DNA from: Octopus bimaculoides
Lineage: Eukaryota
Assembly (NCBI RefSeq): GCF_001194135.2
Contig: NC_068988.1
Location: forward strand, 30,167,155 to 30,231,154
Length of the DNA stretch: 64,000 nt
Reading direction: 5' to 3'
The notes under the pieces were generated by a model. That model worked only from the letters and a program-made list of their open reading frames with translations, did no database searches and was not told where the DNA came from. Each line of letters begins with the position of its first letter. Position 1 is the first letter of the stretch. The position numbers were made by a program, and so were the translations under genes. Shown piece by piece: positions 5,146-34,659 of this stretch.

Positions 5146-5163
5146 ATAGATAGATAGATATAC
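5036..5163. repeat. Compound microsatellite (GAT)n(AT)n(GT)n(ATGT)n(ATAG)n
   Basis: Read directly; one of dozens of simple repeats in the window. Confidence 0.95.
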
Positions 5164-6141: not shown

Positions 6142-6184
<43 letters not shown>

Positions 6185-7025: not shown

Positions 7026-7184
7026 TGGTTCTTGATAAACTCTTGTTTATACTGTTGTTATCTGCACTCTATGTGTATGGTGTGCCTGCACACCAATGCC
7101 TGGCATAATACAGATAACGGATACCAAAAGTATATACAGATAGTTTATCCCTTAGTTGGTTACTATAACCACTAACCCTGTTTA

Positions 7185-7226
<42 letters not shown>

Positions 7227-8466: not shown

Positions 8467-8546
8467 AAATAATTGTCATAATTAAGTTAGTGTTTGGAAT
8501 ATAAACTAACATGAAATTTTGATGGAAGATTTTAATATAGATCATT

Positions 8547-9231: not shown

Positions 9232-9677
9232 TATCTATGTTATAAAGTATTGCAACAGTGCCTCACTAGAGCTTCTGGGCAACGTGAATATATAAGCATC
9301 ACATTTGAGAGAAGAATCTGAATGTTAAAGGATTAAATAGGTTTTAGACTAGGAGTATCATGATAATCTAGGTAGGCCATGTTGAGCAGTGATTATGTGG
9401 GTGAGTTGTGTGTGTGCCATGATATGTCGCAAGGGACTTCAATATTGTGTTGACGTTGTTGTTATTTTTGTTTGTCCTTTAAATTTTAGTTTTGTTTTGT
9501 GTTGTTTTTCTTTATTTAAACAAATTACTGACAATCAGTGAATGTTTTGTTGCATGTTTTTTGACTGTGTGTTTATGATAATGTTTTTGTTTGTTTTTTG
9601 TTTGTTTGTTTTTTTGCATTTTTTTGGTTTGCATCATCCATCATAGTGTAGCTTGCATCTCTTTTGACTTTGCACAG

Positions 9678-10295
9678 ATGGCAGTAGGCCGGAGCCTTTC
9701 TCTATGGAGTCTGAAAAAAATCACATTGTTGAAAACTCTCACTTTATTATCAATTTAGTCAATGGTGCTAATGTGGTCGAAGGAAAGCTCGGCAACGGTG
9801 TAACAATGAATGGAAAAGGTCAGTATGTACGTATCAATGGTAATATGAAGGATTGTATTTACAATCTCAACCATTGTAAGACTGGATTAACGCTTGGTCT
9901 ATGGCTAAAACCATTTGATCTTAACGGCAAGAAATATTATATTTCAAGTCCAGCTTACTCGCTGTATTCGAAGGATAATATCCTCTATGCTAAGTTCCAA
10001 AATGCAACCCATTCTTGGGAAATGTCCACCCCTAAGTTTAAGGGAAACGTCTGGCAACAGGTGGTTATGAGTTGGGATCCAGCAAGGGGTTCCAAGTTGT
10101 ATATAAACCATGAGAAGGTTGCACAAACGACAACTTCAAAACCTTTCATGCAAGGTGATACACCTGCTGAAGGTATATACATCGGTACCAGTGGAAATAA
10201 TGTTGGACGGTTCACACCTGATTTTGATGTTGATGAAGTGCAATACTACAGAACAAGCGTCAATGGAATCCTTGATGGATTTGGACCATTTTATG
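9678..10295 (+). CDS. Neurexin-like gene exon A: pentraxin/ConA-like LamG domain 1 (phase 1-1)
   Basis: cag|AT GGC...TAT G|gtaagt; [55 protein letters not shown]. Confidence 0.9.
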
Positions 10296-10958
10296 GTAAG
10301 TAAATCAATTTAGTTCTAATATATTGTTTATTTATTTCTTGTTTTCTTTTTTTTTTTATTTTTAGCATTTTTTTTTTTTACATTGGTGGAATGTTGGTGA
10401 AGGGAAAATATCAGTTTGTCCATCAACCATGAAACTATAAGGACATCACTGATGAGATACTTTTAAGGGTTTTTTAAACCTTGATTCTTCCAAATGTATG
10501 GTACTTAAATGAGGTCCTTTAACCCTGAAACCATTCAAGCAAGAACAATCATGACGCTTTCCATCTTGAGCAACAAGTTAACCATTACTTTGGTAATAAC
10601 ACTCAATGGTATTATTCCATGAAGAATATGGCTGATAAAATTTCTTAAATATTCCCTGAGATCTTTTATCTTTTACTTGTTTCATCCATTGGACTGTGGT
10701 CATGCTGGAGCGCTGCCTCAAAAGGTTAAATTGGATTAACCACACCTAGTACTTATTTTTCAGTCTAGTATTTATTCTAGTAGTCTCTTTTGGCAAACTG
10801 CTAAGTAATGGGAACATAAACAAACCAACACCGCTTATCAAATGGTGGTAGGAGACAAACACAAAGACACATACACATATACATGTGTGTACATGTATGT
10901 GTATATATATGTGTGTGTGTATATATACATATATATACACACACACACACACATACAC

Positions 10959-11033
<75 letters not shown>

Positions 11034-11234
11034 TTGTGTTTGTCCCCCCGCCATAGCTTGACAACTGGTGTTGGTGAGTTTATGTCCCCATAACTTAGTG
11101 GGTCGACAAAAAAGTTCGATAGAATATGTACTGGGCTTACAAAGAATAAGTCCTGGGGTCAATTTCTTCAACTAAAAGTGGTGCTCCAGCATGGCCGCAA
11201 TCAAATGGCTGAAACAAGAAAAAGGAAAAAAAGA

Positions 11235-11265
<31 letters not shown>

Positions 11266-13202
11266 CATACACATACACACATACATGATGGGCTTCCACA
11301 CAGTTTCCATTTATGAAATTCACTTACAAGGCATTGGTGATCCTCGGGTATCATAGAAGACACTTGTCCAAGGTGCCATGCATCAAGATTGAACCTAAGA
11401 CCATTCAATTGCAAAGTAATGCCTGCACCTATATGTTGTACTTACATGCACCACATATAGAAAAGGTCATGCTGCTACCAAGCAGTGCAGGTCACACTAA
11501 TATCATAAAATTTAAGAAAATACTTAACGCATTTTCAATTGGTCTATTCATCTTCGTTAGTTGCAGTCTTTACACAACAGCTCAATTAGTATAATTAATG
11601 CCCAGTTGTTAGTTGTCAAGTGCCTGGTTTTGTTTGTATTGCTTCTCCGAAAGAGCTTCTTAAATAATATACAAAAAAAATGCTGCTAAACAAACATGTC
11701 AGTATGTCTTGTAGATATTCAGCAAACATTATGAACAACAGTTTAATTAGGATCTTACATGTAATATCAGTGTCGTTAAATTGGGTTGTCAGCTGGCGGA
11801 TTGGTTTGCATCCTGGACGAAATGCTTTGTGGCATCTCTTCTAGCTTTCCTTTCTGAGTTTAAATGCTGTTGGGGTGGAACTTTGCCTTTCATCCTTTCT
11901 GGGTTGATAAAATAAGTTCAAACAATATAAGGACACAGATCGTGTCATATAGCCAGCTGGAGATGATGTCTCCTGGGGCTAAATTACAGCAACATGCTAT
12001 ACTCTTTCTCTTTTACTCTTTTACTTGTTTCAGTCATTTGACTGTGGCCATGCTGGAGCACCACCTTCAGTCAAACAAATCGACCCCAGGACTTATTCTT
12101 TGGAAGCCTAGTACTTATTCTATCGGTCTCTTTTGCCGAACTGCTAAGTTACGGGGACGTAAACACACCAGCATCGGTTGCCAAGCGATGTTGGGGGGGG
12201 ACAAACACAGACACACAAACACATACATACACACATGCATATATATATATATATATATATACGACGGGCTTCTTTCAGTTTCCGTCTACCAAATCCACTC
12301 ACAAGGCTTTGGTCGGCCTGAGGCTATAGTAGAAGACACTTGCCCAAGGTGCCACGCAGTGGGACTGAACCCGGAACCATGTGGTTCGTAAGCAAGCTAC
12401 TTACCACACAGCCACTCCCTTTTGGATTCCTTTTAATCACATTGCTGGTTAATTATTTATTCCTCCATCCATTTTCTCCACCCACTATCCCTGGAAGGAT
12501 TGTAGGGATAGAGCCCTTAGGCCCCTCCTCCATAGGATCCCATCAGAAACAACCATTATTACACTTTCCCATTGAATTCCTTACCATGACCAACTGTGTC
12601 TATAGACATTATCCAACCATCTCATTCCTGGTCAACTCTTAAGTCTCCTGCTGATTGGCTCAGCTTGAGAAATTCATCTTAAGATACTTTCTTACGATAT
12701 TCTTATGTCCATAACATACGATTAATTCATCAGCATTTATTAATTCATAATTAATCAATTCTAGAAAAGGCACCACACAAAACATCATACTTCTACTAGT
12801 CTTCAATGATTAAAAAAAAAACTAACTCTATTCTGTGAAATAGATATTTATTTTTGCACTAATCTCCTCGCCAGATCTCAAATATTCTACTATTCTCAGC
12901 TTCTCAGCTACACATGCTTTCGCTAATTTATGCACTAGCTTCAATAATTATTGAAAATCCATGTCATTGTTTCTACATGAGGGTTCCTTGCTCTCCTTCT
13001 TTCTACTGCATAAAGAAATCCATCCCAGAATGTAAACCAACAGGCTTCATTTTTATTTCCATTTAGCCCAAAGCTTCAGTGATGTCCTTTTTATCTCTAT
13101 TTAAGTAAAACCTGAAAGTTTGTGTTTCTTTATAGGTACACAGCAGAATACTTGCAACAGTGCATGTGCAGAAATCCTGGCTTTTTAAAATTATCGTTAT
13201 TA

Positions 13203-13249
<47 letters not shown>

Positions 13250-13945
13250 GGTATTATTATTATTGAGAGTAGTGCATGCCATCAAAGTGACACTGGGGTA
13301 AAATATACGAAGCCCATTATACGCATCATGACTACCCGTCTGATAAGGGTACACCAGGCACATGCATCACAACCATATGTGCGCAACATGGTGATCTCAT
13401 ATCAAAATAAACAGCGCATGACCTCGCAGGTGGGGCCCAGTTAGAATTTATGAGATAACACCAGATTAACTCAAAATGATGTGAATTAATAAGGATTATA
13501 TTTGACAGAGTAATCTGAATGCGAAAGAGTTAAACTTCTTTCTTCATCACAAGACTCACAGCCCTTAGTCTCCATCCATGAACCTATTCCAGTTGCCACT
13601 TAACTCCTCAGTTTGTGTTGTTCATTAGCACTGTTCTGCCCTTCTTTCATTTTTTACTTGTTTCAGTCATTGGACTGTGGCCATGCTGGGGCACCACTTT
13701 GAAAAGTTTTAGTAAAACATTGACTAGCACCAGCCACTTTAACAAATGTACTGGTTGCTTTTTCTATGGCACCAGCATCAGTTAGGTTGCCAAGATAGTT
13801 CTATAACAATTTGCCTGTGTCACAGTGTTACTTAAGTGTGTCATATTATACTATTAAGTGTATTTTATTAGATCTATCTTGCATATTATTGTCATGCATA
13901 TATTTTTAAGTGCATCATATTTTCTATTATTAAATGCATCATACA

Positions 13946-13984
<39 letters not shown>

Positions 13985-14203
13985 GTGTATCATATCATAC
14001 ATACTACGAAGTGTGTCATATGCATTATTAAGTGTATTGTATGTATTATTGCTACATGTATCATATATATTATTAAGTCTATCATGTACATACCATTTCG
14101 ATATCATCAACATTATATGCTTTCTGTTGCCTGAATGATTACTTCATCTAAAATCTACTGCTTCCAGTCTGCTTGCAGATCAATTCTATACTGTTCATAA
14201 ATC

Positions 14204-14242
<39 letters not shown>

Positions 14243-17200
14243 TTTATATATATATTTGTGTGTGTGTATGTATAGTCATCTAAGAATGCATAAGTCAGAA
14301 AAATGTGTACAGTATTATAGACCCATTCCAGCTGATCTCAAACTATCAGTTTCACACTGGGTATTGGATAACTGGATATCATCTCTGAAGAGCAGGTGGT
14401 GTTACTTCAACTGCACCATTATCAAATATCTGGCAATCTAATACCCTGTACAAAATGGATCTATAATATTATATACCTTGATTAATATATATATATGTAT
14501 GTATGTAGTAATAAAAGCTTTGCTCTTGGGGCATGAGCCTTTTCTGAGACGACTTCAGTCTGCTACAGCATTGTCAGAAATGTCATTAACCAAGAACTTG
14601 CACCTGTTGCTATGTTGTCCTGTTGTTTTCTTGGAGCTAGAAGTTCTCTTCAGAGCTTATATCAGATTCTTCAATCTTTTTCTTTTTAACTCTCTCCCTA
14701 ATCTTGTCTGGTGCTTGACTTAATGTATTCTAACTTATAATATAGCCTTTTGCTAAAGACTATAGTATGCTCTTAATTGCTTAATAAACTAATTAACAAA
14801 GCAGAAGTGAAAAAGTATAAAGCATATATTATTTACCTCATTACTCATCCTCTTTTAATTTTTTTTTTTTTTTTTTTTGGATGGGTGGTTATTCCATTTG
14901 AAAAGCTTTTGATTCTATTAGTCAGTAAGTCAGAGTTATATTGATGAGATTGGTGAGCTGGCGGAATCATTAACACGCCAGACAAAATGCTTTGCAGCAT
15001 TTCGTCCATCTGTATATTCCGAGTTCAAATTTTGCCAGGGTCAACTTTGCCTTTCCTCTTTTCAGGGTCGATAAAATAAGTACTACTTGAGCACTGGGAG
15101 TCGATGTAATCAACTTACCCCTTCTGCAGAACTTACTGGCCTTGTACCAAAATTTCAAACCAATATTGAGGTTAATTTCGTTCAAATTAGAAATGAAAAT
15201 GTATAAAAATAAGAAAAGAAAACCAAAGCAAAATAAAGTAAAATTATGTTTGTCAGTTCTTCAGCTCTTCTCTTCTCCATTTTGTTTTCCAGTTGCTACT
15301 GAGAGTCCTGAAATTGTATTCCGTTTTGATCGACTGCTTCTCCCTCGTGTCAACATGGTTGGTTACCCTGATCTCGTTAGCAGTGACGAGGGCAATGTCA
15401 TTCGACTAAATGGCCGGGACCAATATATCGATCTGGGCAATGATATAACCTGCGGCGGGGACTTAGAAAACTGTGTTGATGGCCATGTGATGCGATTGTA
15501 TGTGAAAGCTGATAAACTTATTGACAACACATATTTCCTTGACAGCTACCCTACATCAGTTTACTATAAAGACGGCCAACTCCATGCTGAAATGAGAACA
15601 GCGACTCAGACCTGGCATGTAAACACTACAGAGTTTGAAGCCGGAACATGGCAATATATTGAACTTGATTGGTACCCAGATGTTGGTCTGAGACTGTTCT
15701 TGAACCGGAGAGAGGTTGCACATGATACTATTCCCTACTTGCACCAGAAACGGCCTACTTCATCAAAAACATACATTGGTCGTTCTCTAAAAGACAGCCT
15801 TAACAGTTATTATTTCAATGGTTTTGTGAAACAGATGGAACTTTGGCGAAGAAACCGAAACTATCATAAACCTAAGCGTAAGTACATAATATAAGTTACA
15901 TAGTTATGTTTTAGTAATAGCTTGGAAAAATTTTTCACTGACTGAAAGAAAAATGGATTGATAAATTTTAAAATATTGCGGAATTTCAAGATTGTACGAG
16001 GGTGAGTCAAAAAAAGTAATGCCATTTTGTTTAGGACAGGTATAATTACCAACTCAGGAACATGTATCATACATCAAAATGAAGTTGGTCCTCTGTGGAT
16101 CACATCCCTACTTCTCAACATAGTCACCGTTTCTCTCAATAGCAATGTTCCACCTTTGAATGAGAGCATATATCCCTGCCCCATAAAATTCTGTCGACTG
16201 TTCATTGAGCCACTTCTTCACTACAGTTTTCATTTCCTTGTCACTGGGCTGCGAAGTTCTGGAAACTTTAGATATGGATTTAGGAACTCTGCTATTCTAA
16301 ACCAACTGTAAAAAGCTAATACGAAAAACTTGAATGTAGTTGTGTATTTAATGAAACATTCCATAAAAGAAAAACTGCTCCCCATATATATATAGATATG
16401 TGACTATATATACATCTATATATTTACAGATGTATATGTGTGCAAAAATATATATCATATATGCATCATATAAATATGCATAGATATAGCTGTGTATATT
16501 AAAATCATTTTCTTTTTTTTTTCCATTTCAGCTGAACAGACTATCACTCTAAGTGGAAACAGTTACTATGGTTTCAACATTTCTATCCGGAATAATACTC
16601 ACCATGTTTCTCCAAATAAGGAACAATTCAAATTAAAATTCAAGAATGATCTTTCTCAAAGGGAAGGTCTTTTATGGTATGCCCTTGACAGCTCACGTAA
16701 AATATTTTTGTACATCAAAGTGAGTACTTTTTCTGAGGTTATGCTACTAGAAACGTCAAACGAATAACTTTCTTAACACTCAACTTACCATAGGAGTCAC
16801 CAGTGACTCCCCATGCTATATTTTTAATATACCATGGGAGTCACCAGTGACTTCTCATTATATTCTTAATACATCATGGGAGTCATAAATGATTTTCCAC
16901 ACTATATTTTTGATAAACTATAAGAGTCACCAGTGTTATATTCTTAATATACCATAGGAGTCATAAGTGACTCTCCACACTGTTTTTGATATACCATGGG
17001 AGTCGCCAGTGACATCCCATGCTGTATTCATTTTATACCATGGGAGTCACCAGTGACTCCCAATGGTGAGTCCTTTCTCTGTAGAACCTCACATTACTGT
17101 AGTTCGAACTACATTATTTGAAATTTAGGAAATGTACAGAGCACATTTATTTGTCTTTCTCAGATGGATTTTGAATTTGAATCAATTAGAAGCTGAAATA

Positions 17201-18894
17201 GGACAGTAAAAAGGATGCAGGCCACTACAAAATAATTTTTTTGAAAAAGAAGCTATTCAGGCTTATATATATAATCTGTTTTAAAAAAATGAAACCAAAT
17301 GAAAATACCATGTTCCAGGGCCCACACAGAGCATATTCTTCAATAATTTTATCAGTTTTCTTGTGTCTTGGGTGGGTCATTGTGTCAATAATAATCATAC
17401 ACACTGGATCTGTTTCACTTTAAATAAGTTAAATTGATTGTCACTTGATTAATTATTTAACCAATTAACTATGAGTTATTTGATTAATTGTTCAATCAAT
17501 CAATCAGCTAAGTCTGTCATTGTCCGTTCATTACCATTCACTATTGATTGGTCTGATTGAATGATTAATCAAATAATCAATTAGTTAATTGGTTTAAGCA
17601 ATTGACAAATAAAAAAATAAACAGGTGACAGAGAACCAGTACATGTACTATTATTGGCATAAAGACCCACCCAGAGATAAAACAAAACATGTTTCATTAC
17701 AAAAATCCACATCAAAAGTTTTGCAAACAAAATACAGAAACGAACAAATTTTATCAGTGTTTTGTGAATTGTTTTGTAATAAAATCTCTTTGGGTCTATT
17801 GTAGGATGGTGACCTTTTCCTGATTATCATTGGGGTCGATGGTCAGAAATACAGATGGAAGATGAAGAAGCCAAGTAATGTCACATTTAATGATGGCAAA
17901 ATGCACAATGTCCTCTTACGAAGAGATGGCCACGAGGTGAGATTGTTTATGTCTTTGTAGGTCTTATCTTCTCTTTTCTTCCATTTCTGCTATATTCTTG
18001 CACACACTTGCACATATTTAACATTTAAATGTTAAATATATGCAAGTGTGTGCAGGATATATAATAACACATGTTACAATTGATGTGTTGTTTAGTAAAA
18101 GAGTGTCATAAGCCCCACCCCAGCCATTTTCAAGGTTAGTTTATCATTTTCTTTGTCTCGACGTCTAGAATCCGAAACAGTTGGGAGGAGGAACCGCCAG
18201 TGTGGCTTGGAATAAAGTCGAAAATCCGGCTGAAAATAATTATACCTCGACGCTATTGACATGACGCTCGCTCACTCAAACTCAGAGCAGAGAGTTTAGT
18301 AACACACCATCGTAAGCACCCACACTCAATAACTTTGGTGTGGTCTTTGTATCAGTTTCCAATGGGCTATTAAAAAATAATCTACAAATCTGATCCAATT
18401 TGTCTGTTTGTTGATCAGAAGTTTTCTCCATTTTCTGATTATTTAAACATATATATATATATATATATACATATATATAACTCATACTCCATACCTCCCC
18501 TCAAAAGAAAAATGATTATCTAAGTTACATGAGCTCTATATTAACCTTGAAGAAGTCCTACCATCATATAGTTAGAATGTGGTAATTTTTTGTAGCATTA
18601 AGCCAAATGCTTCGAAATTCCCTATCAACTAGATGATAGGACTGAAACATACATGTAGGATATTGTTTTCTTTTTTTATTTTAATTCATTTTTCTTTGAG
18701 CTCTCAACTTTTTTTTCAAAATGTCATCTTTTTGTAACATACAAATAAATTATTAATTACATCTACTTATTCTCCATTTTCTTCTTGTTTTCCCCCTATA
18801 TATATAACACTTTTTCAATTCCCGAGCGTTATACTAATACATCTGTTTGTTTTCTACACCAGCTGTCTTCGTCTGTTGTTTTTTTGTGAATTCT

Positions 18895-18950
<56 letters not shown>

Positions 18951-19217
18951 ATGTATGTATATACATATCTATATATATATATATATATATACACCTCAAA
19001 ACATTAATTTTTAAAACTTTTCTTCGTCTTTTCTTCTTCACAGGTTTACTGGAGTGTTGATGACATCTACAGACAAGCTTTCAGTCTGCCAATTTCCATC
19101 AGTCTGTTACGACCCAAGGACTACATCTTCATTGGTGGAACCCCTGACAACATTGACTACACCTCGTCAGAGGTTGACAAAAACTTCAAGGGCATTACAG
19201 GCAATGTAAGCTGCAAG

Positions 19218-19284
<67 letters not shown>

Positions 19285-22200
19285 TCATCATCATCATCAT
19301 CAGGCAGTGAGCTTGCAGACTCATTGGCACGCTGGGCAAAATGCTTAGTGGTAGTCTGTCTGTCATTATGCTCTGAGTTCAAATTCCACCAAGGTCGACT
19401 TTGCCTTTTATCCTTTCAGGGTCGATTAAATAAGTACCAGTTACACACTGGGGTCAATACAATCGACTTAATCCGTTTGTCTGTCCTTGTTTAGCCCCTT
19501 GTGGGAAATAAAGAAATAAGAAACTTTAGCACACCGGGTGAAATGCCTAGCGGTATTTCCCAAGGTGTTGTACAGTGGGACTGAACCCAAAACCACATTG
19601 TGACAAACTGAGCTTCTTAACCACACAGCCATACCTGTGCCTATCATAATCATTATAGCTGCTGCTGCCACTACTACTACTACTAACCCCACAACAGTCA
19701 CTGATTCAACCAGTTTTTTTAATCTTTTTTTTTAGCTGATCTACACATCCGGCCGATATGTTTTGGATATTCTGAATATGAACCCACAGATTATCCACGG
19801 AGTCCATCCACCAACGACCCACACACCCATAGACATCACTCCTTCACAGAAGCCACCCAATACGTTCTCGCCAATAACGTTTGTGCGTCATCAGAGCTAT
19901 GTGGAGACCGATGCTTGGGACATCTCCCAAGGCGGGCAACTCAAGTTCAAGTTCTACACCAATGACCCTGAAGGCTTGATGTTCTACAACGGTGACCCCC
20001 GCTACTACGCGGCTGTTGAAATATCTGAAGGAAAACTCTACTTTGTCTATAACTTTGGCGATGGCAGCAAACGAATTAGTTTCTTTGATGATATTGTCAA
20101 TGATCGACAAGCCCACGAAGCCACCGTTACAATAAACCCTTTGAAGACGTTTCTGAAGTTGGAATTGGATAACAAGAAGAAGAGTGTTCGTCTGCAACTC
20201 AACGAAAGACAAAATCGACCGCTGCCAGGTCCTATGTATGTTGGTTGGGTACCAAATGCTAACAGACTGCCATGGGACCTTTGGGCTAAGAAAGGATACC
20301 AAGGTTGTTTGCTGAATGTGCAGGTGAGTTCACATATCTCTCCTCTTATCATCATCATCATCATCATCATTGTCACTATCATCATCTTTTATCATTTCTT
20401 TTGTCATCTATATCATCATCATCATCGTCGTCTTCATTACCATCATCATCATCATCATCATCAGCATTTATTATCATCGTTATTGTTATGATGATGATCA
20501 TCAACATTATTGTTATCGTCATTCATTGTCATTGTCCTCATCATCGTCACCATCATCATCGTCACCATCATCTTTATCATTTCCGTTGTCATCTATATCA
20601 TCTTCATTGTCATCATCATCATCCTCATTATCGTCATCACTTCCATCACTTAATTACCATTTTCTTTTACATTTAATGAACATTTTCTTTTTCTCTCTTT
20701 TAGATGAACCATATCAGAACCAACCTTCTCAGTAATGTGGGAAGATTCCAGCTCGGTCGCGCCATCGATGCACGTTGCTACCCTATTGTACCCCAGTGTG
20801 ACAGCACAACATGTAAAAATGGCAACTGCATTGACTACTGGAATGGTTATAGTTGTGACTGTACCAACGAACCTTTCACTGGCCCCAATTGTGGTCAAGG
20901 TATCCAGAATTTACTTCATTTGGTCAACTTCAATGTGTCCCATTTCATTACACAAATACGGGACATTTACATTTTTATCTTTTATTTGTTTCAGTCATTA
21001 GACTGCTGCCAAGCTGGAGCACTGCCTTGGAGAATTGTTTCAGTTAAATGAATCAACCCCAATACTTAATATTTTTTTAAAGCCTAGTATTAATTCTATT
21101 GGTTTCTTTTGTCGAACCACTACGTTATGGGGATATAAGCACACCAGCAGCAATTGTCAGGCAGTGGTGGGGAACAAACACAGACACAAAAATGCACAAA
21201 CATAAATGTATACATATCAGTATGCTCCGTTGGATGTGTAATGTCAATGTGAATACCCGTCAGAGTGTAAGTATCTTGAGAGAAAAGCTGAACATTAGAA
21301 GCATCAGTTGTGGTGTGCAAGAGAGACGATTGCGCTGGTATGGACATGTGGTGAGAATGGATGAGGATAGCTGCGTGAAAAAGTGCCACACTCTAANNNN
21401 NNNNNNNNNNNNNNNNNNNNNNNNNNNNNNNNNNNNNNNNNNNNNNNNNNNNNNNNNNNNNNNNNNNNNNNNNNNNNNNNNNNNNNNNNNNNCTTTGGAA
21501 ATGTGCTGTGCGTGAGAAGACCCGGCAAGCCAAGTAAGATCGTTGCCAGTGCCCCTGGACTGGCTCTTGTGCGGGTGGCACATAAGATGCACCATTTTGA
21601 GCATGGCCGTTGCCAGTACCGCCTGACTGGCCTCCAAGGGATTTTCGAGCGAGATCGTTGCCAGTGCCCCTGGACTGGCTTGTGCGAGTGGCACATAAAA
21701 GACACTATTTCGAGCGTGGCCATTGCCAGTATCGCCTGACTGGCCTTCATGCAGGTGACACGTAAAAGCACCTACTACACTCTCTGAGTGGTTAGCATTA
21801 GGAAGGGCATCCAGCTGTAGAAACTCTGCCAAATTTAGATTGGAGCCTGGTGTTGCCATCCGGTTTCACCAGTCCTCAGTCAAGTCGTCCAACCCATGCT
21901 AGCATGGAAAGCGGACGTTAAACGATGATGATGATGATGATGATGATGATATAAATAATTAGAAAATGGAGAAAACCATAGATTAACCCACACATCGATT
22001 GGACCACATTTATAGCTTATTTATTAATACAAAGTATGGCATAACAAATCTTACAGTTGTTTCTAATCAGATTGCCAGAAACTAGGTTTGACGGATCTTC
22101 TCAAGCACATCTCAAATAATAAATCAATGCCTGTTAGAAATAATCTTCATAAATTCAAATAGGAGTTATTTGCAAAGCACAATAGCAAGACTTTATAAAT

Positions 22201-22715
22201 ACTTGATCCATAAATGCATCTCTTTTACAGCTGCTCCTGTCACCATGTTTGATGGCACCAAAGGGGCCTGGGTTATCTTTGCTGATGCCATACGCTCTCA
22301 TACAAATGATATTTCCCTACGCTTCAAGACACATCTCAGTAACACTACCCTGTTCCATACGACAGCTGAAAATTCCACAGACAGTGCAATGGCTGTACTT
22401 GAAAATGGAATTTTGAAACTTATTATAACGGTCAACGGCCAAAGAAAGGTAAAACAATAGTTTTTTTAATGATATTCAAGAATATTTTGGAAATGTTCTT
22501 TACATTAACTATAAATTTATATTATAAATTCATTTATAAGAGGAAAATGTTGTCGCACTTATATCGGCAACTTAATTGCAGACACTGGCCTGGAATGGTA
22601 TCCAGGACCTCAAAGCAGTGATGACGGACCAAGAAGTGCGATGGGTAGACTTAGTTGTTGCGACCCAGTTTGGAACCAGGCCATAATAAAAAATAATCAA
22701 ATTATATACATATGC

Positions 22716-22756
<41 letters not shown>

Positions 22757-22959
22757 GTGTGTGTATATATATATGTGTATAGTTGGAATTTACAAAAAAA
22801 CAAAAGACAAAGACGGGTGTGTAAACAACAAACAGATGTATTAGTTTAATGCTCAGGAAGTGAGAAAGTCTTTTACGTTTCAAGCCTACGCTCTTCGACA
22901 GAAAGGAACACAGAAATAAACAGGGAGAGAAAATAAAAAAGGTTTAGTGNNNNNNNNNN

Positions 22960-22999
<40 letters not shown>

Positions 23000-25900
23000 G
23001 TGTGTGTATATATATATGTGTATAGTTGGAATTTACAAAAAAACAAAAGACAAAGACGGGTGTGTAAACAACAAACAGATGTATTAGTTTAATGCTCAGG
23101 AAGTGAGAAAGTCTTTTACGTTTCAAGCCTACGCTCTTCGACAGAAAGGAACACAGAAATAAACAGGGAGAGAAAATAAAAAAGGTTTAGTGGCTAGCGA
23201 CCAATCATAGCGAAATATATATATATATATATATATATAAATTTACTTTATAAATTCATTTATGTCTGTATGTCATAATTACCAAATAGCAATTAAAACC
23301 AGCTCCACTTGAAGAAGAGGTCAACATGCCATTAAGGAAAAGGAGAAGCTTATTGGCTGGAGTTAAGAGGACTTTGATTTATATTAGAAAAAGAGTAGAA
23401 CACATTTATGTTCGAGGTAATTTGCATAATTTAAGCATAAATGAGCCAAGGAAAATAACTCAAAGTGGCCCTTGGCATATATTAGGACAACAGAGGCAAA
23501 TACAAATATGTCATGTACCATACGATATAAATTATCAATTTATTAAAATTACCTGTGCCTTTAGACAATGGCAGTTAAGACTGGCTCCTTATGAGAAGGG
23601 GAAACAATCTCAAGAATGAAGAATTTCTTTAAAGTTGAGAGGATATCAAAGCAAAAAAGAGGCTTATTGACTGGGGGGATGAGGGGACAGCTGTGATTCT
23701 AGCTTGACAGCTACAAAAGTACTGTTTATGATTGGAATTGGTGTCCAATATCCATTTTCTCCATTTTGTAGATAACACTTCTATCACCATGGTGTTGTTC
23801 ATTTTGTTTTGTTTTGTTTTTTTGTTTCAATTTCTAGGTTCTTCGGGCTGGTTCTGATTTGAATGACCAGAAATGGCACACCATGCAGCTGAAAAGGAAG
23901 GGGAACCAATTATATCTTAAAGTTGACAATGGCAAAGCAAGTGAAGGTAAATTTGATTTGAGTTCATAATTTTTTTTCTCCTCACATATTGAATTCTTGA
24001 CCAGAAGGTTGTGAAGGCGCATGGCACAGTGATCAGAGTGTCAGGCTCACAATCATGAGGTAGTGAGTTCAACTCCCAGACCAAGCTGTTTGTTGTGTTC
24101 TTGAGCAAGACACTTTATTTCATGGTGCTCCAGTTCACTCAGCTGTAGAAATTGGTTGCAGCATCACTGATGCCAAGTCGTATTGGCCACTTTGCCTTTC
24201 CCTTGGACTACATCAGTGGTATGGAGATGGTAAACTGGTATGCATGGGTGACTGCTGGTCTTCCACAAAAAAACTTGCCTGGACTTATGCCTCAGGGGGG
24301 AACTTTCTAGGTGCAATCCCATGGTCATTCATGACCGAAGGGAGTCTTTACCCAATTTTACTTTACTACATGTTATTGTAAACACTACTACATGTAAGTT
24401 TATATGTGAACATAGACACTGCTATAATTTACTTTGCAAATTCAGGTATCTTTCAATGAAAATGATGCTTTAAGTTCTGTTTGGTTACATGATAACTCCC
24501 TTTTTTTTTCTAAGCACCTGTTTCTCAAATGTTTTTGTTTAATTTCAGGTCATGTTGATGGTAAAGGATTTTATTTCATCATGAAGCGATTGGACATTGC
24601 ATCGGCAAAAGGAGGAAGTCCAGATGGCAGCTACTTCGTTGGTTTCTTGCAGAATCTTTTCTACAATGGACATGATGTTTTCTCCATGGAACAGCGAGAA
24701 CCTCGTACCACTCTTGTCTTTGTCAACAATACTAATCGTCTGCCTTCTATTGTCTACAACCCTATCACTATTTCAAACATCAAAAGTTTCGTTCGTTTAC
24801 CAAAACTGAATTCATTAGGAAACATTATTGAATTAATGTTTAAAACTAAAGAGTCCAGTGGAATCCTTCTCTTCAACAATGGTATGAACAATGAATTCAT
24901 TGCACTAGAAATCTTCAAACGTAATCTGTGGCTTGTCTATGACACAGGCAAAAACCCAACATCCATCCATTTGAACTCCCTTGATGTTAGCGATGACAAA
25001 TGGCACTCGGTCAAGATTAACTTTGTCACACCCCAGCAGATTATTGCCCACGTTGATGGTTCTGAGGTGATTTATAACCAACAGGCTTCAGACAAACTTG
25101 ATTTAGATGGTCCTCTTTATCTGGGTGGCATACCCAAGTCATTACTGAAGGGGAAAATTGCTGAACAATTAAGTTCTACGCATGGATTTAAAGGCTGCTT
25201 GGCTTCTATACATCTGAATGACAAACCTGTTGGTATGGGTAACTTGGCTGGTAAAGGTTCCAGTATCAAATCTGGTTGTCTTGGTACGTTAATATATTTT
25301 ATATATTTAATTTATTCTTATTTATTTGATTTGGTAATGATGTGTTGGATACTTGTTTCAGTTTTTTATGGTTCTTGTAAATATCCAGTTTCTTTCCAAA
25401 AATTTAACTGATTTTGAAAAAGTTATACATGTGCAATTGGTATGTAATTATGAATCAATGATTAAAATGCTTAATGTAAATGTTATAAATCATAATAAGC
25501 GCTAGTCTAGTGCTCATATAGAAAAATGGATAGGTTACTGTTTATCATATATTCTTTATTTTCCTTCTTACAGCTATATCTACCATCTGTCAAAAGACAA
25601 CTTGTGCCAATAATGGGCGATGCCATCAGGGGCCGACTGGTTATCTATGTGACTGTGACAAAACTGGTTACACAGGTACCAGATGTACCGAACGTGAGTA
25701 TGCTCCTATTTGTATGTTTATTTATTTTACGAAAGTATGTCTGTACATAGAAAGGTTCTCTGCCTGGGTTAAAGAGCCTCTATTAGTTTCTGTTCAGGAT
25801 TACTTGTTTCTTAAATAAATTGCCTTCCGTGCAGTCTGTAGAGTCCACAATTCTTCCTAATGCTACAATCTGAAAGCCACATCTTTCCATCAAATTGGGA

Positions 25901-27683
25901 TATATGTATATGTGTGTGTGTGTGTGTATCAGTCATGTCCACAGGCAGACTTATGTCCACTAATTGATAAATAATCCCTGCCTAATTATAATACCAAAAA
26001 ATACAACTGATCTGCCTGTTTTTCCTTCTAGTTGTGATTCTGAATTTCGGTGCCTCCCACTTTAATCCAAAGCAAAATTCTTCCCATTTTAATGGAATAG
26101 CTAATATGTTTTATGTATTATATACATCTCTCCTTGGTTATGGTTAAATGACTGCGGTAGCTATTGTATAATATACATTACAAAATATGCATGACGAAAT
26201 GACTGTCATCATCCATGTCTTTGATTGGTCACTTGTACATTGTTGAAACAATTGTAAATTATGGAATAAATGTAATGACATAGATCCTCCCTTCTTCATT
26301 GTGTCTGTGTATTGCCTTTTCTTGCCTTGGACCTTCAGTTCCTGATAAAGTCATAAAGACACTATCATGATATGCAGTAAACCTTAGGCGTTTTTAGACC
26401 TGGAAAAGGGCCATCTCTCTCCAAGTCTAACCATACTTGATTTTCTCCCAAAGAGGGAGAGAAAAAAAAGAGAGAAGAACTGATTCCAGTACAGAACTGA
26501 TACTTTATTAATCTCAGAAAGACAAAAGATATAACTGACTTCAGTGATATTCAAATTCAGATTACAAAGAGCCAGAATAAAGACTACTAGGAAGTCTATC
26601 TGATACTCTATCAACTTGGCCAATTTCCTAGCTTATAGATATATAAATATATACACCAAACCCATTCACAAAACTTTGGTCAACTTAGGGTTATAGTAGA
26701 AGTTGTGAAGGCACATGGCTTAGTGGTTAAGACAATCGGCTCATGATCATAAGGTCATGAGTTCAATTCTCAGTGACATGTTGTGTCCCTGAGCAAGACA
26801 CTTTATATCACGTTGCTCCAGTCCACTCAGCTGGCAAAAATGAGTGGTACCTGTATTTCAAAGGGCCGGCCTTGTCACACTCTGTGTCATGCTGAATCTC
26901 CCTGAGAATTACGTTAGGGGTACATGTGTCTGTGGAGTACTCAGCCACTTGCACGTTAATTTCACGAGCAAGCTGTTCTGTTGATCGTATCAGCTGGGAC
27001 CCTCGTCATCGTAACCAACCGAGTGTTCCTGCCTATAGTAGAAGATACTTGCCCTGAGTGTCACACAATGGGACCAAACCTAGGACCATGTGGTTGGGAA
27101 GCAAACTTATTATGCTGCCACATCTACTCATTTGATAAATGGAAACTGTGTGGAAGCCTATCAATTGTGTTTTTTTTTTTTAATGTACAACTGTCAAGCT
27201 GCCTTCTTTATGTAAGTAATAAACTAACATTGCTGGTCCCTTTTTGTTTTTTCTCTCTACAGAACCCCTTGGTTACTACATTGGCAAGAACAAGCTGCAT
27301 GGTGTAATAGTATATACCTACCCCCCAGATAAACGTATCGACTCTTCAGAAGAGGAACTTGCTTTAGGCTTTATGACACAGCATACTAATGGTGTATTGA
27401 CTCGTATTGTCAGTAGCGTCAACGATGACTTCATCGAAATACGAATGGTTTGTTGTTCCTTTTCCACATTCTTCATTTTTCATTTATCTTTCTCTCTCAC
27501 TCTTCTACCCACCCCACTAGCAACCTATCCTCCTAACTCTGCCGACTCACTACATTCCCCTCCCCTCCATCTCCCACTCTACTTTCACAACCTCCAGACT
27601 TACCCACCCACTCACCTTATCCAATCTCCACCCAGTCATGTTTCCACCATCTTATCTCTCTCACTCTCTCTCCCTCTCACTAC

Positions 27684-27715
<32 letters not shown>

Positions 27716-28064
27716 ATAAATATGCCCTTTTAAAGCCTAGCCAGGCTCATGGGCCCAGTTTCCTGGTTTCAATGGCGCATGTGTTCCCCAGCTGGACAGG
27801 ATGCCTGTCCATNNNNNNNNNNNNNNNNNNNNNNNNNNNNNNNNNNNNNNNNNNNNNNNNNNNNNNNNNNNNNNNNNNNNNNNNNNNNNNNNNNNNNNNN
27901 NNNNNNNNNNNNNNNNNNNNNNNNNNNNNNNNNNNNNNNNNNNNNNNNNNNNNNNNNNNNNNNNNNNNNNNNNNNNNNNNNNNNNNNNNNNNNNNNNNNN
28001 NNNNNNNNNNNNNNNNNNNNNNNNNNNNNNNNNNNNNNNNNNNNNNNNNNNNNNNNNNNNNNNN

Positions 28065-28108
<44 letters not shown>

Positions 28109-29453
28109 TAATCATAGTGTACAGGCATCCAGAACTGATCAACAAGGAACACTTTTCTATATTTTAGAGATGAGGAATTCTGGACATTATTTACATTGGA
28201 CAGATATTTGTCCTCATCTTGTTTGTTGTTAACACAACGTTTCGGCTGATATACCCTCCAGCCTTCATCAGGTGTCCTGGTAGAATTTTGAACCTAACAC
28301 TGGGTTCTCATTCCTAAGGTATTTTTTGCTGATGTTACTATTACGTTGATGACACCTTTATATTCTGGCCCCACCAGGAAGATGTCCAAGTACTACTAGA
28401 TCATGTGAACTCAATAAAGCCATCCATACAGTTCACAATGCGAAAGGAAAAAGACAATCAGCTGGCATTCCTGGACGTATTAATACCACGCACCAAGTAT
28501 GGATTCAGGACATCCATATACCGCCAGCCAACCTTCACTGGATGATATTTCAACTTCAATTCCCACCATCTTCTCTCTTCTTCTCTCCATACAGAGAAAC
28601 GAGACATGCAACATAAAGAGTATATCCCTTCGTCAGTTGTCCCTGTCAGTGCCTGTATGTACATATATCTGCTAAGTTGCAAGATGGTCCCTCATCCTTC
28701 CTTCAGAATTGCTCTGAACCTGTGACTGAACTGTTAAAAGCCTGCAAGTAACAACACCATTTCTCATAAAATGCAGGACAAGATAAACTTTTTTTCTTTT
28801 CAAAATAAAATATATTCAACCAACAATAATATTTCAATGTGTAGTGACTATGGCTGTATCAGACCCTATTTATCTTTTCAGGTTGATGGCAAAATCCAGG
28901 CCATCTATGATACAGCTGGAAGTAAACATATCTTAAGCAGCATTGGGAATTACAGTGATGGACAATATCACACATTGTACTTCACAAGAAATTTTACAGA
29001 CTCTGTTTTGTTAATAGATAATAATGAAAGTATTACCAGTGAAAACGAAGGTCAGATATTGTTGTTTTTGTTTTTGTGCTATTTTCTTATTACTTTAAGT
29101 ATCTGCTTTTCTGCTTGTTTCAGTCATTGGACTGCAGCCATACTTGTCAGCATCTTGAAGGGTTTAGCTGAATAAATTGACCTCCTAGAATTTATTTTCT
29201 TAAAGTCTCGTACTTGGTCTCTTTTGCCACACTTTTGGTCTCCTTTGCCACACTCCTAAAATACAGGGGTGTAAACTAACCAACACCAGTCGTCAAACAG
29301 TGAGTATGGACAAATGCAAAGACAGACTGGAGCAATTTAAAATGAAGTGTTTTGCTCAAGAACATAATGCGCCACTATGTCTGGGAATTGAACCCACAAA
29401 CATCTAAATCATGAGTGCCACACCTTAACCACTTGACTATGCACCTTCATATA

Positions 29454-29503
<50 letters not shown>

Positions 29504-30925
29504 GTGGGCTTCCACACAGTTTCCAACATCCATTTTCACTCACAAGATGTTATTTGCCTCAAGTCTATTGTAGGAATCACTTGCCCAAGGTGCTGCACAG
29601 TGGTACTGAACCCCTAAAGGGAGCAGCTCCTGCTGGAGAGACTCCTTGATCTCTGACCTCCACATCCTGTCAAGTAACATTACTCCAAAGATAGTTTGGA
29701 GGGTCCCAAAGGATCTTTGGAAGTACTTGCCTTTGCCATCATACTCTTTTGGTCATTTATCTTCGGTTGTTCATTATGACATTGTTACAAAACCTTAACA
29801 CAATCTTTTCACTTGCAGATACCTACCCAGCTGGCTATTTTGATAAATTAACTACAATAACTGTGGGTGCAGCTGAAAAGATCTCTGCTAGTGAATACAA
29901 AGAACCGTTTTATGGTATCATTGGAGGTGAGTACCTTTTCTTTCTTTTTTACAGCAATTACGCCAGATTATTCCAGCTTATGAGTCACAAATATTTTTCT
30001 TATTTTTTCTGATGCCGTTTTATATGGTTTTGTCAAAGGGAGAGAAGAAAGAACAGTAAGGCTGCGAAGGGAGGTAATGCAACAGAGGGGTGGGAATAAA
30101 AAGAGACAGAAAGAAAGAAATATCACAACTAGATACTGGAGGAAGTAAACAGACCAAGATATCAAGTTTTCTTCTGACCAGAGACCAGGTCTGCAACACA
30201 GCAGACATTACTAAAGGCATCCATTTAGGGTGATGTTAAATTAAGCTGTAGATTAAGCCTGGCACCCACAAACTAGTATATTTCCTCTATCAGGTTTCAG
30301 TACAGTTTCTGTACACTCAATTACAGTCACAAGACTTGGGTCAGCTCATGTTTGCAATAGAAGACTTTTGCCCAAGGGGTACGCCCTTCCAATTTGGATA
30401 GCCATGTATGATTTCTACAGCAAGACACCAGTTCCTGTCCGTCTATCATACTTAAATCTCTCCATCTCTTGGCACGGTTAAATTTTTGGTTAACAGATTA
30501 ATAGTTAACAAAGTTAACTTTTCGCTTAATGGTGCCCACCTTTGGTACTCAAAGAAAATGCTATAAAACTCAAACTAATAGAGCTCTTCATAGAATGTGT
30601 GCTGTGCCTGTTAGGGTTATGGTTTTCTTGGTACCATATCTACAAATTTTTCCATTCCTTTCATTATTACTTCAAATAACAAGTATTGTAGAGCTTTTCA
30701 TCTTCATCTTCCACATTTGGCAGTTTCCATACTCTGATTTTTTTGTCCTATTGAATTTTGTTGAGTTCTAATCATTTTCTTTTTTAAAATTTAATATCTT
30801 TTATTCCTTTATTCTTTTGATCAGGTTACAATTTCAATAATCTATTCCTGTTTAACAATCGTAGAAAACTGACAATATCAGGTGATGCCGTCATTGCAGA
30901 CATACCATATTCTCTTTCAGGGTAA
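9678..30925 (+). CDS. Neurexin-like multi-LamG/EGF protein, 5'-partial, >=1400 aa (2x pentraxin/ConA-like LamG, LNS, LNS, EGF, LNS, LNS, EGF, LNS)
   Basis: join(9678-10295,15293-15877,16532-16719,17805-17936,19044-19205,19736-20323,20704-20899,22231-22448,23838-23946,24549-25283,25574-25693,27263-27447,28882-29050,29819-29926,30825-30921 or -30925). All 14 introns are GT-AG with matching phases; 4210 nt open. Motifs align to alpha-neurexin LNS2-LNS6 (SPITF..SYV..W; LNDQKWH; NPITI..KSFV.L; [14 protein letters not shown]). Confidence 0.9.
12010..12418 (-). mobile_element. tRNA-derived SINE, family B, near full-length and CpG-retaining (young)
   Basis: Reverse head ggagtggctgtgtggtaagtagcttgct...gggttcagtcccactgcgtggcaccttgggcaagtgtc. 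Similar copies at 32845-33200, 51720-52105, 52950-53335, 55850-56150 (-) and 33325-33695, 43975-44125 (+). Confidence 0.85.
15293..15877 (+). CDS. Neurexin-like gene exon B: pentraxin/ConA-like LamG domain 2 (phase 1-1)
   Basis: cag|TT GCT...AAG C|gtaagt; [41 protein letters not shown]. Confidence 0.9.
15995..16248 (-). mobile_element. Mariner relic: transposase C-terminus plus terminal repeat
   Basis: - strand [45 protein letters not shown] (16247-16108); TA-cgagggtgagtcaaaaa TIR at 15995. Confidence 0.85.
16532..16719 (+). CDS. Neurexin-like gene exon C (LNS2-like, part 1)
   Basis: cag|CT GAA...ATC AAA|gtgagt; [19 protein letters not shown]. Confidence 0.9.
16786..17065. repeat. Minisatellite of 7 units (about 34-44 bp), each built on a 26-bp palindrome
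   Basis: Consensus core catgggagtcac-ca-gtgactcccatg separated by related AT-rich linkers. Confidence 0.9.
17805..17936 (+). CDS. Neurexin-like gene exon D (LNS2-like, part 2)
   Basis: tag|GAT GGT...CAC GAG|gtgaga; [25 protein letters not shown]; absent from the ORF track. Confidence 0.88.
17996..18057. repeat. 31-bp perfect-centre hairpin/palindrome in an intron
   Basis: Centre between 18026 and 18027; only a C-A mismatch (18013/18040) and a U-G wobble (17998/18055). Confidence 0.9.
19044..19205 (+). CDS. Neurexin-like gene exon E (LNS2-like, part 3)
   Basis: cag|GTT TAC...GGC AAT|gtaagc; [21 protein letters not shown]; absent from the ORF track. Confidence 0.88.
19736..20323 (+). CDS. 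Neurexin-like gene exon F (Pro/Thr linker plus LNS3-like)
   Basis: tag|CTG ATC...GTG CAG|gtgagt; [36 protein letters not shown]. Confidence 0.92.
20345..20660. repeat. Degenerate (CAT/CGT)n trinucleotide tract, about 300 bp, intronic
   Basis: Read directly; produces spurious poly-His/Ile/Ser ORFs. Confidence 0.9.
20704..20899 (+). CDS. Neurexin-like gene exon G (EGF domain)
   Basis: tag|ATG AAC...CAA G|gtatcc; [32 protein letters not shown]. Confidence 0.92.
21218..21540 (+). mobile_element. RTE-clade LINE ORF2 3' fragment spanning a gap
   Basis: [39 protein letters not shown], followed by the family C tail. Confidence 0.8.
22231..22448 (+). CDS. Neurexin-like gene exon H (LNS4-like, part 1)
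   Basis: cag|CT GCT...AGA AAG|gtaaaa; [17 protein letters not shown]. Confidence 0.9.
22870..22905 (-). ncRNA. Hammerhead-like motif (variant core CUGUCGA) in a repeat terminus; duplicated at 23113-23148
   Basis: CUUU-CUGUCGA-A-GAGC-GUAG-GCUU-GAAAC-GUA-AAAG: stems I and II pair, minimal palindromic stem III; core A6 is U. Confidence 0.45.
23838..23946 (+). CDS. Neurexin-like gene exon I (LNS4-like, part 2)
   Basis: tag|GTT CTT...GAA G|gtaaat; [32 protein letters not shown]; absent from the ORF track. Confidence 0.9.
24549..25283 (+). CDS. Neurexin-like gene exon J (end of LNS4-like plus LNS5-like)
   Basis: cag|GT CAT...CTT G|gtacgt; [44 protein letters not shown]. Confidence 0.92.
25574..25693 (+). 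CDS. Neurexin-like gene exon K (EGF domain)
   Basis: cag|CT ATA...GAA C|gtgagt; [33 protein letters not shown]. Confidence 0.92.
27263..27447 (+). CDS. Neurexin-like gene exon L (LNS6-like, part 1)
   Basis: cag|AA CCC...CGA ATG|gtttgt; [30 protein letters not shown]. Confidence 0.9.
28191..28327 (-). mobile_element. Penelope-like terminal repeat (pLTR) fragment, inverted relative to the adjacent RT fragment
   Basis: Homologous to 34060-34191 on the + strand; contains the hammerhead motif; abuts the PLE RT at 28342. Confidence 0.7.
28231..28276 (-). ncRNA. Minimal type I hammerhead ribozyme motif
   Basis: GACAC-CUGAUGA-A-GGCUG-GAGGGUAUAU-CAGCC-GAAAC-GUU-GUGUU: core intact, stem I GACAC/GUGUU, stem II 5 bp, palindromic AACGUU stem III. 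Extra A before stem II; U at position 17. Confidence 0.65.
28342..28569 (+). mobile_element. Penelope-like element reverse transcriptase fragment
   Basis: [59 protein letters not shown], typical PLE RT motifs from the YVDD catalytic motif onward; one stop at 28543. Confidence 0.85.
28882..29050 (+). CDS. Neurexin-like gene exon M (LNS6-like, part 2)
   Basis: cag|GTT GAT...GAA G|gtcaga; [19 protein letters not shown]. Confidence 0.9.
29819..29926 (+). CDS. Neurexin-like gene exon N (LNS6-like, part 3)
   Basis: cag|AT ACC...GGA G|gtgagt; ITVGA..PFYGIIG. Confidence 0.88.
30825..30925 (+). CDS. Neurexin-like gene exon O (end of LNS6-like): spliced at 30921 or read through to TAA at 30923-30925
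   Basis: cag|GT TAC AAT...[27 protein letters not shown]|gtaagt; unspliced reading gives SG*. Confidence 0.8.
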
Positions 30926-34191: not shown

Positions 34192-34247
34192 TTAGTGTAA
34201 ATAATGAACTCTGATAAGTCTTTGACTGTTTTTTTCCTTCCTTTCAG

Positions 34248-34617: not shown

Positions 34618-34659
<42 letters not shown>

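Follow-up and report, generated by a model that had tools for sequence, protein, structure and literature searches.

A probable PHRED-1-type membrane protein gene in Octopus bimaculoides, combining N-terminal Laminin_G_3 repeats, a neurexin-like cassette and a WD40 tail

A stretch of 64,000 nucleotides from Octopus bimaculoides (contig NC_068988.1 of assembly GCF_001194135.2, forward-strand positions 30,167,155 to 30,231,154; hereafter the window) contains a neurexin-like gene, of which 15 exons (A to O) had been noted in a preliminary description made from the sequence. We conclude that this locus is very probably one large gene for a type I membrane protein of the PHRED-1 family, with exons A to O encoding the extracellular part and three exons further downstream, W1 to W3, encoding a WD40 tail. 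The gene fits the definition of PHRED-1 (Pharynx regeneration defective-1), a protein of Schmidtea mediterranea that was introduced as a "divergent neurexin-1 homolog" (Adler and Sanchez Alvarado 2017, bioRxiv 10.1101/131789). It belongs to an already described family and does not represent a novel gene type.

Exon structure and the link between ectodomain and WD40 tail

In a second cephalopod, the ectodomain, the membrane helix and the WD40 domain are physically linked. A contig from a cephalopod-like genome (ENA ERZ21867824 ctg111426l, 118,597 nucleotides, no N; stretches L003 and L004) carries on one strand the homologues of exons H to N (L004), an exon O', an exon of 1.33 kb and the exons W1', W2' and W3'. 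In the 1.33-kb exon, a Pro/Thr stalk and a Gly-rich stretch precede a helix (...LTWAFVQCKPG), after which come a long Ser/Gly-rich linker and the first WD40 blade VRVDCCLMTNDGNSVVTGSSTGAPQVWDMR; membrane helix and WD40 domain are thus encoded on one exon in this animal. Its phases are precisely those left open by the octopus exons O (phase 2) and W1 (phase 0). The exons and the assembly gaps that interrupt the octopus gene are as follows.

Exon A, 9678-10295, + strand: Laminin_G_3 domain, concanavalin A (ConA)-like, phase 1 at both ends
Exon B, 15293-15877, + strand: second Laminin_G_3 domain, phase 1-1
Exon C, 16532-16719, + strand: beginning of the first LNS domain (compare neurexin LNS2)
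Exon D, 17805-17936, + strand: middle part of the first LNS domain
Exon E, 19044-19205, + strand: close of the first LNS domain
Exon F, 19850-20323, + strand: second LNS domain (compare LNS3); position 19832 could serve as another in-phase acceptor
Exon G, 20752-20899, + strand: EGF domain (compare EGF2)
Assembly gap, 21397-21492: in intron G/H, flanking exon phases 1/1
Exon H, 22231-22448, + strand: beginning of the third LNS domain (compare LNS4); homologue at L004 2-133
Assembly gap, 22950-22959 (10 N): in intron H/I, flanking phases 0/0, inside a duplicated repeat
Exon I, 23838-23946, + strand: middle part of the third LNS domain
Exon J, 24549-25283, + strand: close of the third LNS domain and the complete fourth (compare LNS5)
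Exon K, 25574-25693, + strand: EGF domain (compare EGF3)
Exon L, 27263-27447, + strand: beginning of the fifth LNS domain (compare LNS6)
Assembly gap, 27813-28064: in intron L/M, flanking phases 0/0
Exon M, 28882-29050, + strand: middle part of the fifth LNS domain
Exon N, 29819-29926, + strand: further part of the fifth LNS domain
Exon O, 30825-30921, + strand: close of the fifth LNS domain, phase-2 GGTAAGT donor
Assembly gap, 31803-32735 (933 N): between O and W1, presumed home of a missing exon of about 1.3 kb
Exon W1, 34248-34406, + strand: WD40 region, phase 0-0, 74% identity to L003 7827-7997
Exon W2, 35363-35986, + strand: core of the WD40 propeller
Exon W3, 36852-37100, + strand: final WD40 blades and stop codon (37098-37100), with the family C-terminus ALGDKFGARKLIMLQVV
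Second cephalopod, exon O', L003 1176-1287: phase 1 in, phase 2 out
Second cephalopod, 1.33-kb exon, L003 4813-6139: phase 2 in, phase 0 out, single exon between O' and W1'

Each of the 15 ectodomain exons (9678-30921) is bordered by an AG acceptor and a GT donor, the phases agree, and the spliced exons give a single frame without stop codons. The preliminary description had proposed exactly such a set of phase-consistent exons, and had put the frame at 1400 amino acids or more; with canonical borders it amounts to 1349. Pfam searches carried out with one predicted domain at a time yielded the order LamG3-LamG3-LNS-LNS-EGF-LNS-LNS-EGF-LNS, which agrees with the order deduced earlier, in which the first two domains had been written as X-X. 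The two stretches of Laminin_G_3 (PF13385) encoded by exons A and B scored 58.8 bits (cutoff 27.6), while exons C to O contain five Laminin_G_2 domains with 44.5 to 86.8 bits (cutoff 22.9) and two EGF domains with 27.1 and 30.1 bits (cutoff 21.5).

The earlier placement of the gene end at 30925 did not hold, since exon O ends in a phase-2 donor and WD40 exons follow on the same strand at 34248-37097. The TAA at 30923-30925 is intronic and would be reached only by read-through of the GGTAAGT donor at 30921/30922. Exons W1 to W3 were found by tblastn of the Pomacea canaliculata protein PVD37937.1 on the window; they lie after the colinear exons A to O and are all in phase 0. W2 shares 70% identity with Pomacea (212 amino acids), 82% with the second cephalopod and 100% with the UniProt entry A0A0L8FK86_OCTBM. 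Taken together, the WD40 part encoded by W1 to W3 is 68% identical to that of Pomacea, 55% to that of Ylistrum and 52% to that of Owenia. Family members have in common the C-terminal motif ALGDK..(A/S/Q)RKLIMLQ(V/I)V, and the octopus tail ends with ...SKVRKHVLA. A model of the WD40 tail (predicted local distance difference test score, pLDDT, 86.8; predicted template modelling score, pTM, 0.85) had its best fold matches among eight-bladed propellers, such as ODA16, TBLR1 and Fbw7, without close sequence identity, and the octopus propeller is therefore probably eight-bladed as well.

Further evidence for the joining of the two halves comes from a JGI contig of 2063 nucleotides (L001), in which one open frame runs through a Gly-rich stretch, the membrane helix GALIGLLLLGSGIGWALYKFKPG, the LNISSPRA motif (LNISSPRATSNYQLVKAVGG) and a linker to WD40 sequence. 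The helix and motif of L001 match Pomacea MMWAFYRCKPGW and LNISSPRASGTNKPLLTAVGG, which are located directly after the last LNS domain. Indeed, a membrane-helix signature, GPRAGA..G.ILG......S..WAFY.CKPG, is common to the family models of Pomacea, Ylistrum, Owenia and Aplysia. In the cytoplasmic linker, a motif ATLR(V/A)TGTFSNKGTAIGTP is common to the second cephalopod (L003 4813-6139) and the bivalve Potamilus (P0150, residues ~1390-1420), and it may represent a short conserved site for docking or phosphorylation that separates helix and WD40 domain.

The two halves of the protein differ in their degree of conservation. Between the octopus and the second cephalopod, identity amounts to 41-62% for the ectodomain exons and to 74-82% for the WD40 exons, with exon J (41%) and W2 (82%) at the extremes; between the octopus and Pomacea, the respective values are 31% for the ectodomain and 68% for the WD40 part. 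The ectodomain thus evolves rapidly, and the WD40 tail changes at a much lower rate.

However, it should be noted that several observations weigh against our interpretation. The exon for the stalk, the helix and the first blade was not found in the readable sequence of 30922-34247 when the Pomacea, Ylistrum, P0018 and P0022 proteins and the second-cephalopod exon were used as queries at the protein and DNA levels, and we infer the continuity from ectodomain to WD40 tail in this assembly from a relative and from the splice phases. Likewise, no further LamG3 exons, 5' exon or signal peptide were found in 1-9677 by tblastn or with a profile of the LamG3 repeat. UniProt lists the WD40 tail as a separate protein of 360 amino acids (A0A0L8FK86_OCTBM), and RefSeq divides the PVD37937.1 locus of Pomacea into three genes, namely LOC112562040, "neurexin-1b-like" and the WD40-encoding "HET-E-1-like". 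Lastly, outside Pomacea the ectodomain is only 25-27% identical to family members, which is no higher than its identity to canonical neurexins (24-29%). Pairwise identity can therefore not decide orthology and, in view of the divergent ectodomain, the assignment to the PHRED-1 family rests on the architecture, the WD40 tail and a distance tree.

The two annotations, together with the stop codon that directly follows exon O if the donor is unused, would be in line with two or three separate genes, in which case a secreted neurexin-like protein would end at the TAA at 30923-30925 and an independent cytosolic WD40 protein would be encoded at 34-37 kb. We regard this arrangement as improbable. The stand-alone octopus model lacks the first WD40 blade, and its first 17 residues have no counterpart in any orthologue, while the Pomacea "neurexin-1b-like" model starts partway through an LNS domain. 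Moreover, the helix and the first WD40 blade share an exon in the second cephalopod, L001 holds helix and WD40 sequence in a single open frame, fused models are known from Aplysia, Ylistrum, Owenia and Bugula, and the 8-kb transcript of planarian PHRED-1 was confirmed by rapid amplification of cDNA ends (RACE) (bioRxiv 10.1101/131789). A secreted isoform arising by read-through beside the full-length product would be a minor one. As to A0A0L8FK86 itself, the 17 residues in question (MRTQVRNFPKTPDEGWR) derive from an intronic open reading frame (ORF) at ~34050-34110, and the entry is a truncated stand-alone model of the WD40 tail at 34248-37100.

For a single gene, the location of the exon for stalk, helix, linker and first blade has to be accounted for. 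As the readable sequence has no counterpart of this exon, the gap at 31803-32735 is the only place left between O and W1, and the exon most likely sits inside it. In the second cephalopod, the equivalent exon has many Gly codons and is of low complexity, which may be the cause of the assembly failure in the octopus. At the other end of the gene, exon A starts in phase 1, which implies the existence of at least one upstream exon; since none is detectable in 1-9677, the 5' end would be located outside the window. Hydrophobic leader sequences open the family members of Owenia, Ylistrum and Aplysia. The three gaps within the ectodomain all lie in introns and are harmless. Their flanking exons are in phase, and the Pomacea homologue spans all three junctions in one high-scoring segment pair (octopus residues 5-1347 correspond to Pomacea 328-1760), which indicates that no coding sequence was lost in them. 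The alignment with neurexin-1alpha likewise spans the three junctions.

We also considered whether the locus might be a pseudogene in decay, or a chimera of the assembly that merely resembles a gene. The many gaps and repeats, the lack of the 5' end and the membrane-helix exon in the window, and the fact that no annotated octopus ectodomain protein was recovered in the whole-ectodomain protein search would be compatible with this explanation. It is nevertheless very unlikely, because the 18 exons have canonical splice sites, consistent phases and not a single in-frame stop codon, and because the second cephalopod has the same exon order at the above-mentioned levels of identity.

Relation to canonical neurexins

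The best solved relative of the octopus ectodomain is neurexin-1alpha (PDB 3QCW; E-value 1e-113), followed by CELSR1, agrin and laminin at about 1e-21. The first octopus LNS domain aligns to neurexin LNS2, and a single colinear stretch of 272 bits corresponds to EGF2-LNS4-LNS5-EGF3-LNS6. The notion that the last five LNS domains echo LNS2 to LNS6 of neurexin is therefore supported by a colinear alignment with 3QCW. Compared to canonical alpha-neurexin, the order LNS2-LNS3-EGF2-LNS4-LNS5-EGF3-LNS6 is shared, whereas LamG3 domains stand in the octopus gene where LNS1-EGF1 would be expected, and its C-terminal part is a WD40 propeller instead of a short syndecan-like tail that binds PDZ domains. 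Where the models are complete, the canonical neurexins of Owenia, Octopus and Pomacea do have the neurexin tail (PF01034), and that of Owenia ends with ...KEWYV.

This colinearity raises the question whether the window gene could be the canonical octopus alpha-neurexin orthologue, divergent or mis-spliced at its 5' end. Besides the match to neurexin-1alpha, the automated names of family members, such as 'neurexin-1' in Aplysia and 'neurexin-1b-like' in Pomacea, point in that direction. Several findings make this extremely unlikely. Firstly, O. bimaculoides has a canonical neurexin on another record, of 147.8 Mb (XP_014785491.1 and isoforms, "neurexin-3"), and a search with the canonical neurexin of Owenia showed that separate canonical neurexins are also present in O. 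sinensis, O. vulgaris, Argonauta, Pomacea, Batillaria and Owenia. Secondly, the mollusc canonical neurexins that were checked are 41-49% identical to that of Owenia, whereas the window gene shares only 24-29% identity with the canonical neurexins sampled. Thirdly, in a neighbour-joining (NJ) tree of LNS2 to LNS6, all 200 bootstraps split the WD40-type proteins of octopus, Pomacea, Ylistrum and Owenia from the 11 canonical neurexins sampled, a level of support that long-branch effects may inflate. Lastly, the gene lacks LNS1-EGF1 and has WD40 exons instead of a neurexin tail. Both the search and the tree were thus negative for an ordinary neurexin-1 orthologue, and the view put forward in the preliminary description, that the gene is a paralogue, is sustained by them. 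Judged from its sequence, the window gene is neurexin-related but a paralogue, not the canonical orthologue.

Family membership and the N-terminal LamG3 repeats

Planarian PHRED-1 (2536 amino acids) comprises 6 LamG and 9 EGF domains besides a signal peptide and a membrane helix, and its WD40 repeats are intracellular. It is expressed in muscle and required for normal muscle fibres and for regeneration of the pharynx and the intestine. The same study reported that LamG, EGF and WD40 domains occur together only in lophotrochozoans, named Octopus among the homologues, and noted a strong conservation of the C-terminal WD40 repeats as well as the fact that all homologues were unstudied as of 2017 (bioRxiv 10.1101/131789). 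Later papers citing PHRED-1 deal with planarians, except for one on a bacterial WD40 protein.

Several of the features that define PHRED-1 were recognised in the octopus gene. Extracellular LamG and EGF domains are present (five Laminin_G_2 and two EGF domains above the Pfam gathering scores), W1 to W3 provide WD40 sequence with a conserved C-terminus downstream on the same strand, and the proteins found have a lophotrochozoan distribution. The likeness comprises LamG and EGF domains outside, a C-terminal WD40 domain and conserved last repeats, and would extend to one membrane helix, presumably encoded in the gap at 31803-32735; it should be noted that the octopus gene is likened here to the published description of planarian PHRED-1. 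The two proteins differ in that the planarian one has 6 LamG and 9 EGF domains, and the octopus one five LNS domains, two EGF domains and at least two N-terminal Laminin_G_3 domains.

When the whole ectodomain was used in a word-indexed search, two proteins only were retrieved, Batillaria KAG5710229.1 and Pomacea LOC112562040, both from gastropods. The exhaustive search used exon J alone and, because its summed scores give an advantage to proteins rich in LNS domains, orthologues cannot be ranked from it. Family members were therefore chosen by their length, Pfam content and motifs. Those most informative for the comparison are the following.

Pomacea canaliculata PVD37937.1 (C0Q70_00539, 2432 amino acids): colinear with every octopus exon; LamG3, cassette, stalk, helix and WD40
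Pomacea LOC112562040: LamG3 repeats, then the first LNS domain
Batillaria KAG5710229.1 (925 amino acids, N-terminal part only): at least 4 tandem LamG3 domains, then the same neurexin-like cassette
Owenia fusiformis CAH1790210.1 (3736 amino acids): leader, 4 LamG3, 10 LNS, stalk, WAFY.CKPG helix and WD40; LNS1-like N-terminus
Ylistrum balloti RefSeq XP_060080039.1 (2626 amino acids): leader, 9 LNS, WAF..CKPG helix and WD40; no LamG3, four extra LNS
Aplysia californica RefSeq XP_012941838.1 ("neurexin-1", 1764 amino acids): signal peptide, LNS from the start, helix and the same WD40; no LamG3
Bugula neritina KAF6037742.1 ("nrx-1"): model with LamG and C-terminal WD40

The relatives come from gastropods, including heterobranchs, from bivalves, an annelid and a bryozoan, and all named proteins that combine LamG domains with this WD40 tail were of mollusc, annelid or bryozoan origin in a WD40 search that was not exhaustive. 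Names such as 'neurexin-1', 'neurexin-1b-like', 'neurexin-1-alpha' and 'nrx-1' have been attached to PHRED-1-type proteins of Pomacea, Aplysia, Plakobranchus and Bugula (P0005, P0174, P0158 and P0452), which bear the WD40 tail or the WAFY.CKPG helix and not a neurexin tail.

Exon A resembles the penultimate LamG3 repeat of Batillaria (P0001, residues 500-682, 37% identity) and that of Pomacea, and exon B shares 40% identity with the final LamG3 repeat of Pomacea (P0007, 568-731). Pomacea, Batillaria and Owenia, the ectodomains of which are ~24-31% identical to that of the octopus, have about four or more such repeats, whereas the octopus window shows two. Each repeat has one invariant cysteine pair. 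No EGF domain is located between the LamG3 pair and the first LNS domain, and exons A and B had no sequence relative among the solved structures of the PDB at E-values of up to 1. An AlphaFold2 model of the repeat (pLDDT 83.8) is an all-beta sandwich of the jelly-roll type, and its nearest folds are ConA-like lectin jelly-rolls with template modelling (TM) scores of 0.63-0.68 and 11-17% identity. We take these matches of a predicted structure as a generic fold resemblance and nothing beyond. The earlier assignment of exons A and B to ConA-type domains that replace LNS1-EGF1 is consistent with these data, as they encode ConA-like Laminin_G_3 domains and the first LNS domain aligns to LNS2. The alternative label of pentraxin had to be dropped; Pfam recognised PF13385 only, and no pentraxin was present among the top 50 fold matches.

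Tandem Laminin_G_3 domains ahead of the LNS cassette are found in octopus, Pomacea, Batillaria and Owenia. They are absent from the Aplysia and Ylistrum models and go unmentioned in the text of the planarian PHRED-1 paper. The presence of these domains in some members and their absence from others indicates that the N-terminal region of the family is variable, and the LamG3 repeats of PHRED-1-type proteins seem to be undescribed. An N-terminus rebuilt from another LamG family, as envisaged in the preliminary description, remains plausible as a case of domain shuffling, since exon A, like exon B, is phase 1-1, but such an event would be old, being common to gastropods and an annelid. For the same reason, the gene cannot be considered specific to cephalopods: the layout of LamG3 plus LNS occurs in Pomacea, Batillaria and Owenia, and the wider family in bivalves, heterobranchs and a bryozoan. 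The proposed function in the nervous system found no evidence, and the only studied member acts in planarian muscle; a neural role in cephalopods is thus neither supported nor excluded. It is conceivable that the LamG3 repeats are an undescribed ancestral module of the PHRED-1 family which confers a ligand specificity of its own, and that the cephalopod ectodomain has a role in the nervous system beside or instead of one in muscle, but this is a tentative idea to which we give rather little credence.

Genomic surroundings, proposed layout and significance

The window as a whole is AT-rich (37% GC) and rich in repeats, and it contains ten N gaps. Transposon debris and interspersed repeats were observed at 21099-21390, 36364-36689 (+ strand), 28333-28542 (+ strand), 22575-23186 (- strand) and many other sites, and a duplicated block lies on both sides of the 10-N gap at 22950. 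Two ORFs resemble the tails of long interspersed nuclear elements (LINEs), and a reverse-transcriptase-like ORF is located in intron L/M; short interspersed nuclear element (SINE)-like copies are frequent, and (TA/CA)n runs occur throughout the window. The transposon-like ORFs, intronic and downstream, had no Pfam match at E-values below 0.01. About 9 kb past the WD40 stop codon and on the opposite strand, an exon-like ORF at 46071-46358 (minus strand) matches AhpC-TSA (PF00578, 49.7 bits). It represents a fragment of a peroxiredoxin gene that is 1-Cys/Prdx6-like by motif.

The proposed product of the octopus gene would start beyond the window and continue with at least two Laminin_G_3 domains (A and B) and the neurexin-like cassette (C to O). 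The cassette would be followed by a stalk rich in Pro/Thr and Gly, a single membrane helix (...WAF..CKPG), a Ser/Gly-rich cytoplasmic linker and a WD40 propeller, of which the first blade would be encoded by the exon in the gap and the remainder by W1 to W3. Such a type I protein could function as a receptor or in adhesion, with LamG3 and LNS domains that may bind extracellular partners, as the LNS domains of neurexins do. Its slowly evolving WD40 propeller may recruit cytoplasmic partners in place of the PDZ-binding neurexin tail. By analogy with planarian PHRED-1, the protein may be an organiser of cell-cell or cell-matrix contacts, possibly in muscle.

These findings have implications for annotation. 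They correct the present picture, in which the WD40 tail is an orphan protein in UniProt, an octopus ectodomain protein was not recovered in the protein search and relatives bear misleading "neurexin-1" names, and they indicate that a key exon was apparently lost in an assembly gap. They also add N-terminal variation to a group-specific family that has been little studied. In PHRED-1 proteins, an adhesion ectodomain of the neurexin type is joined to a WD40 propeller inside the cell, a combination known from no other animal group. As planarian PHRED-1 is the only member studied, the octopus locus provides a mollusc and cephalopod entry point to the partners of the WD40 propeller and to the question of a role in muscle versus nerve.

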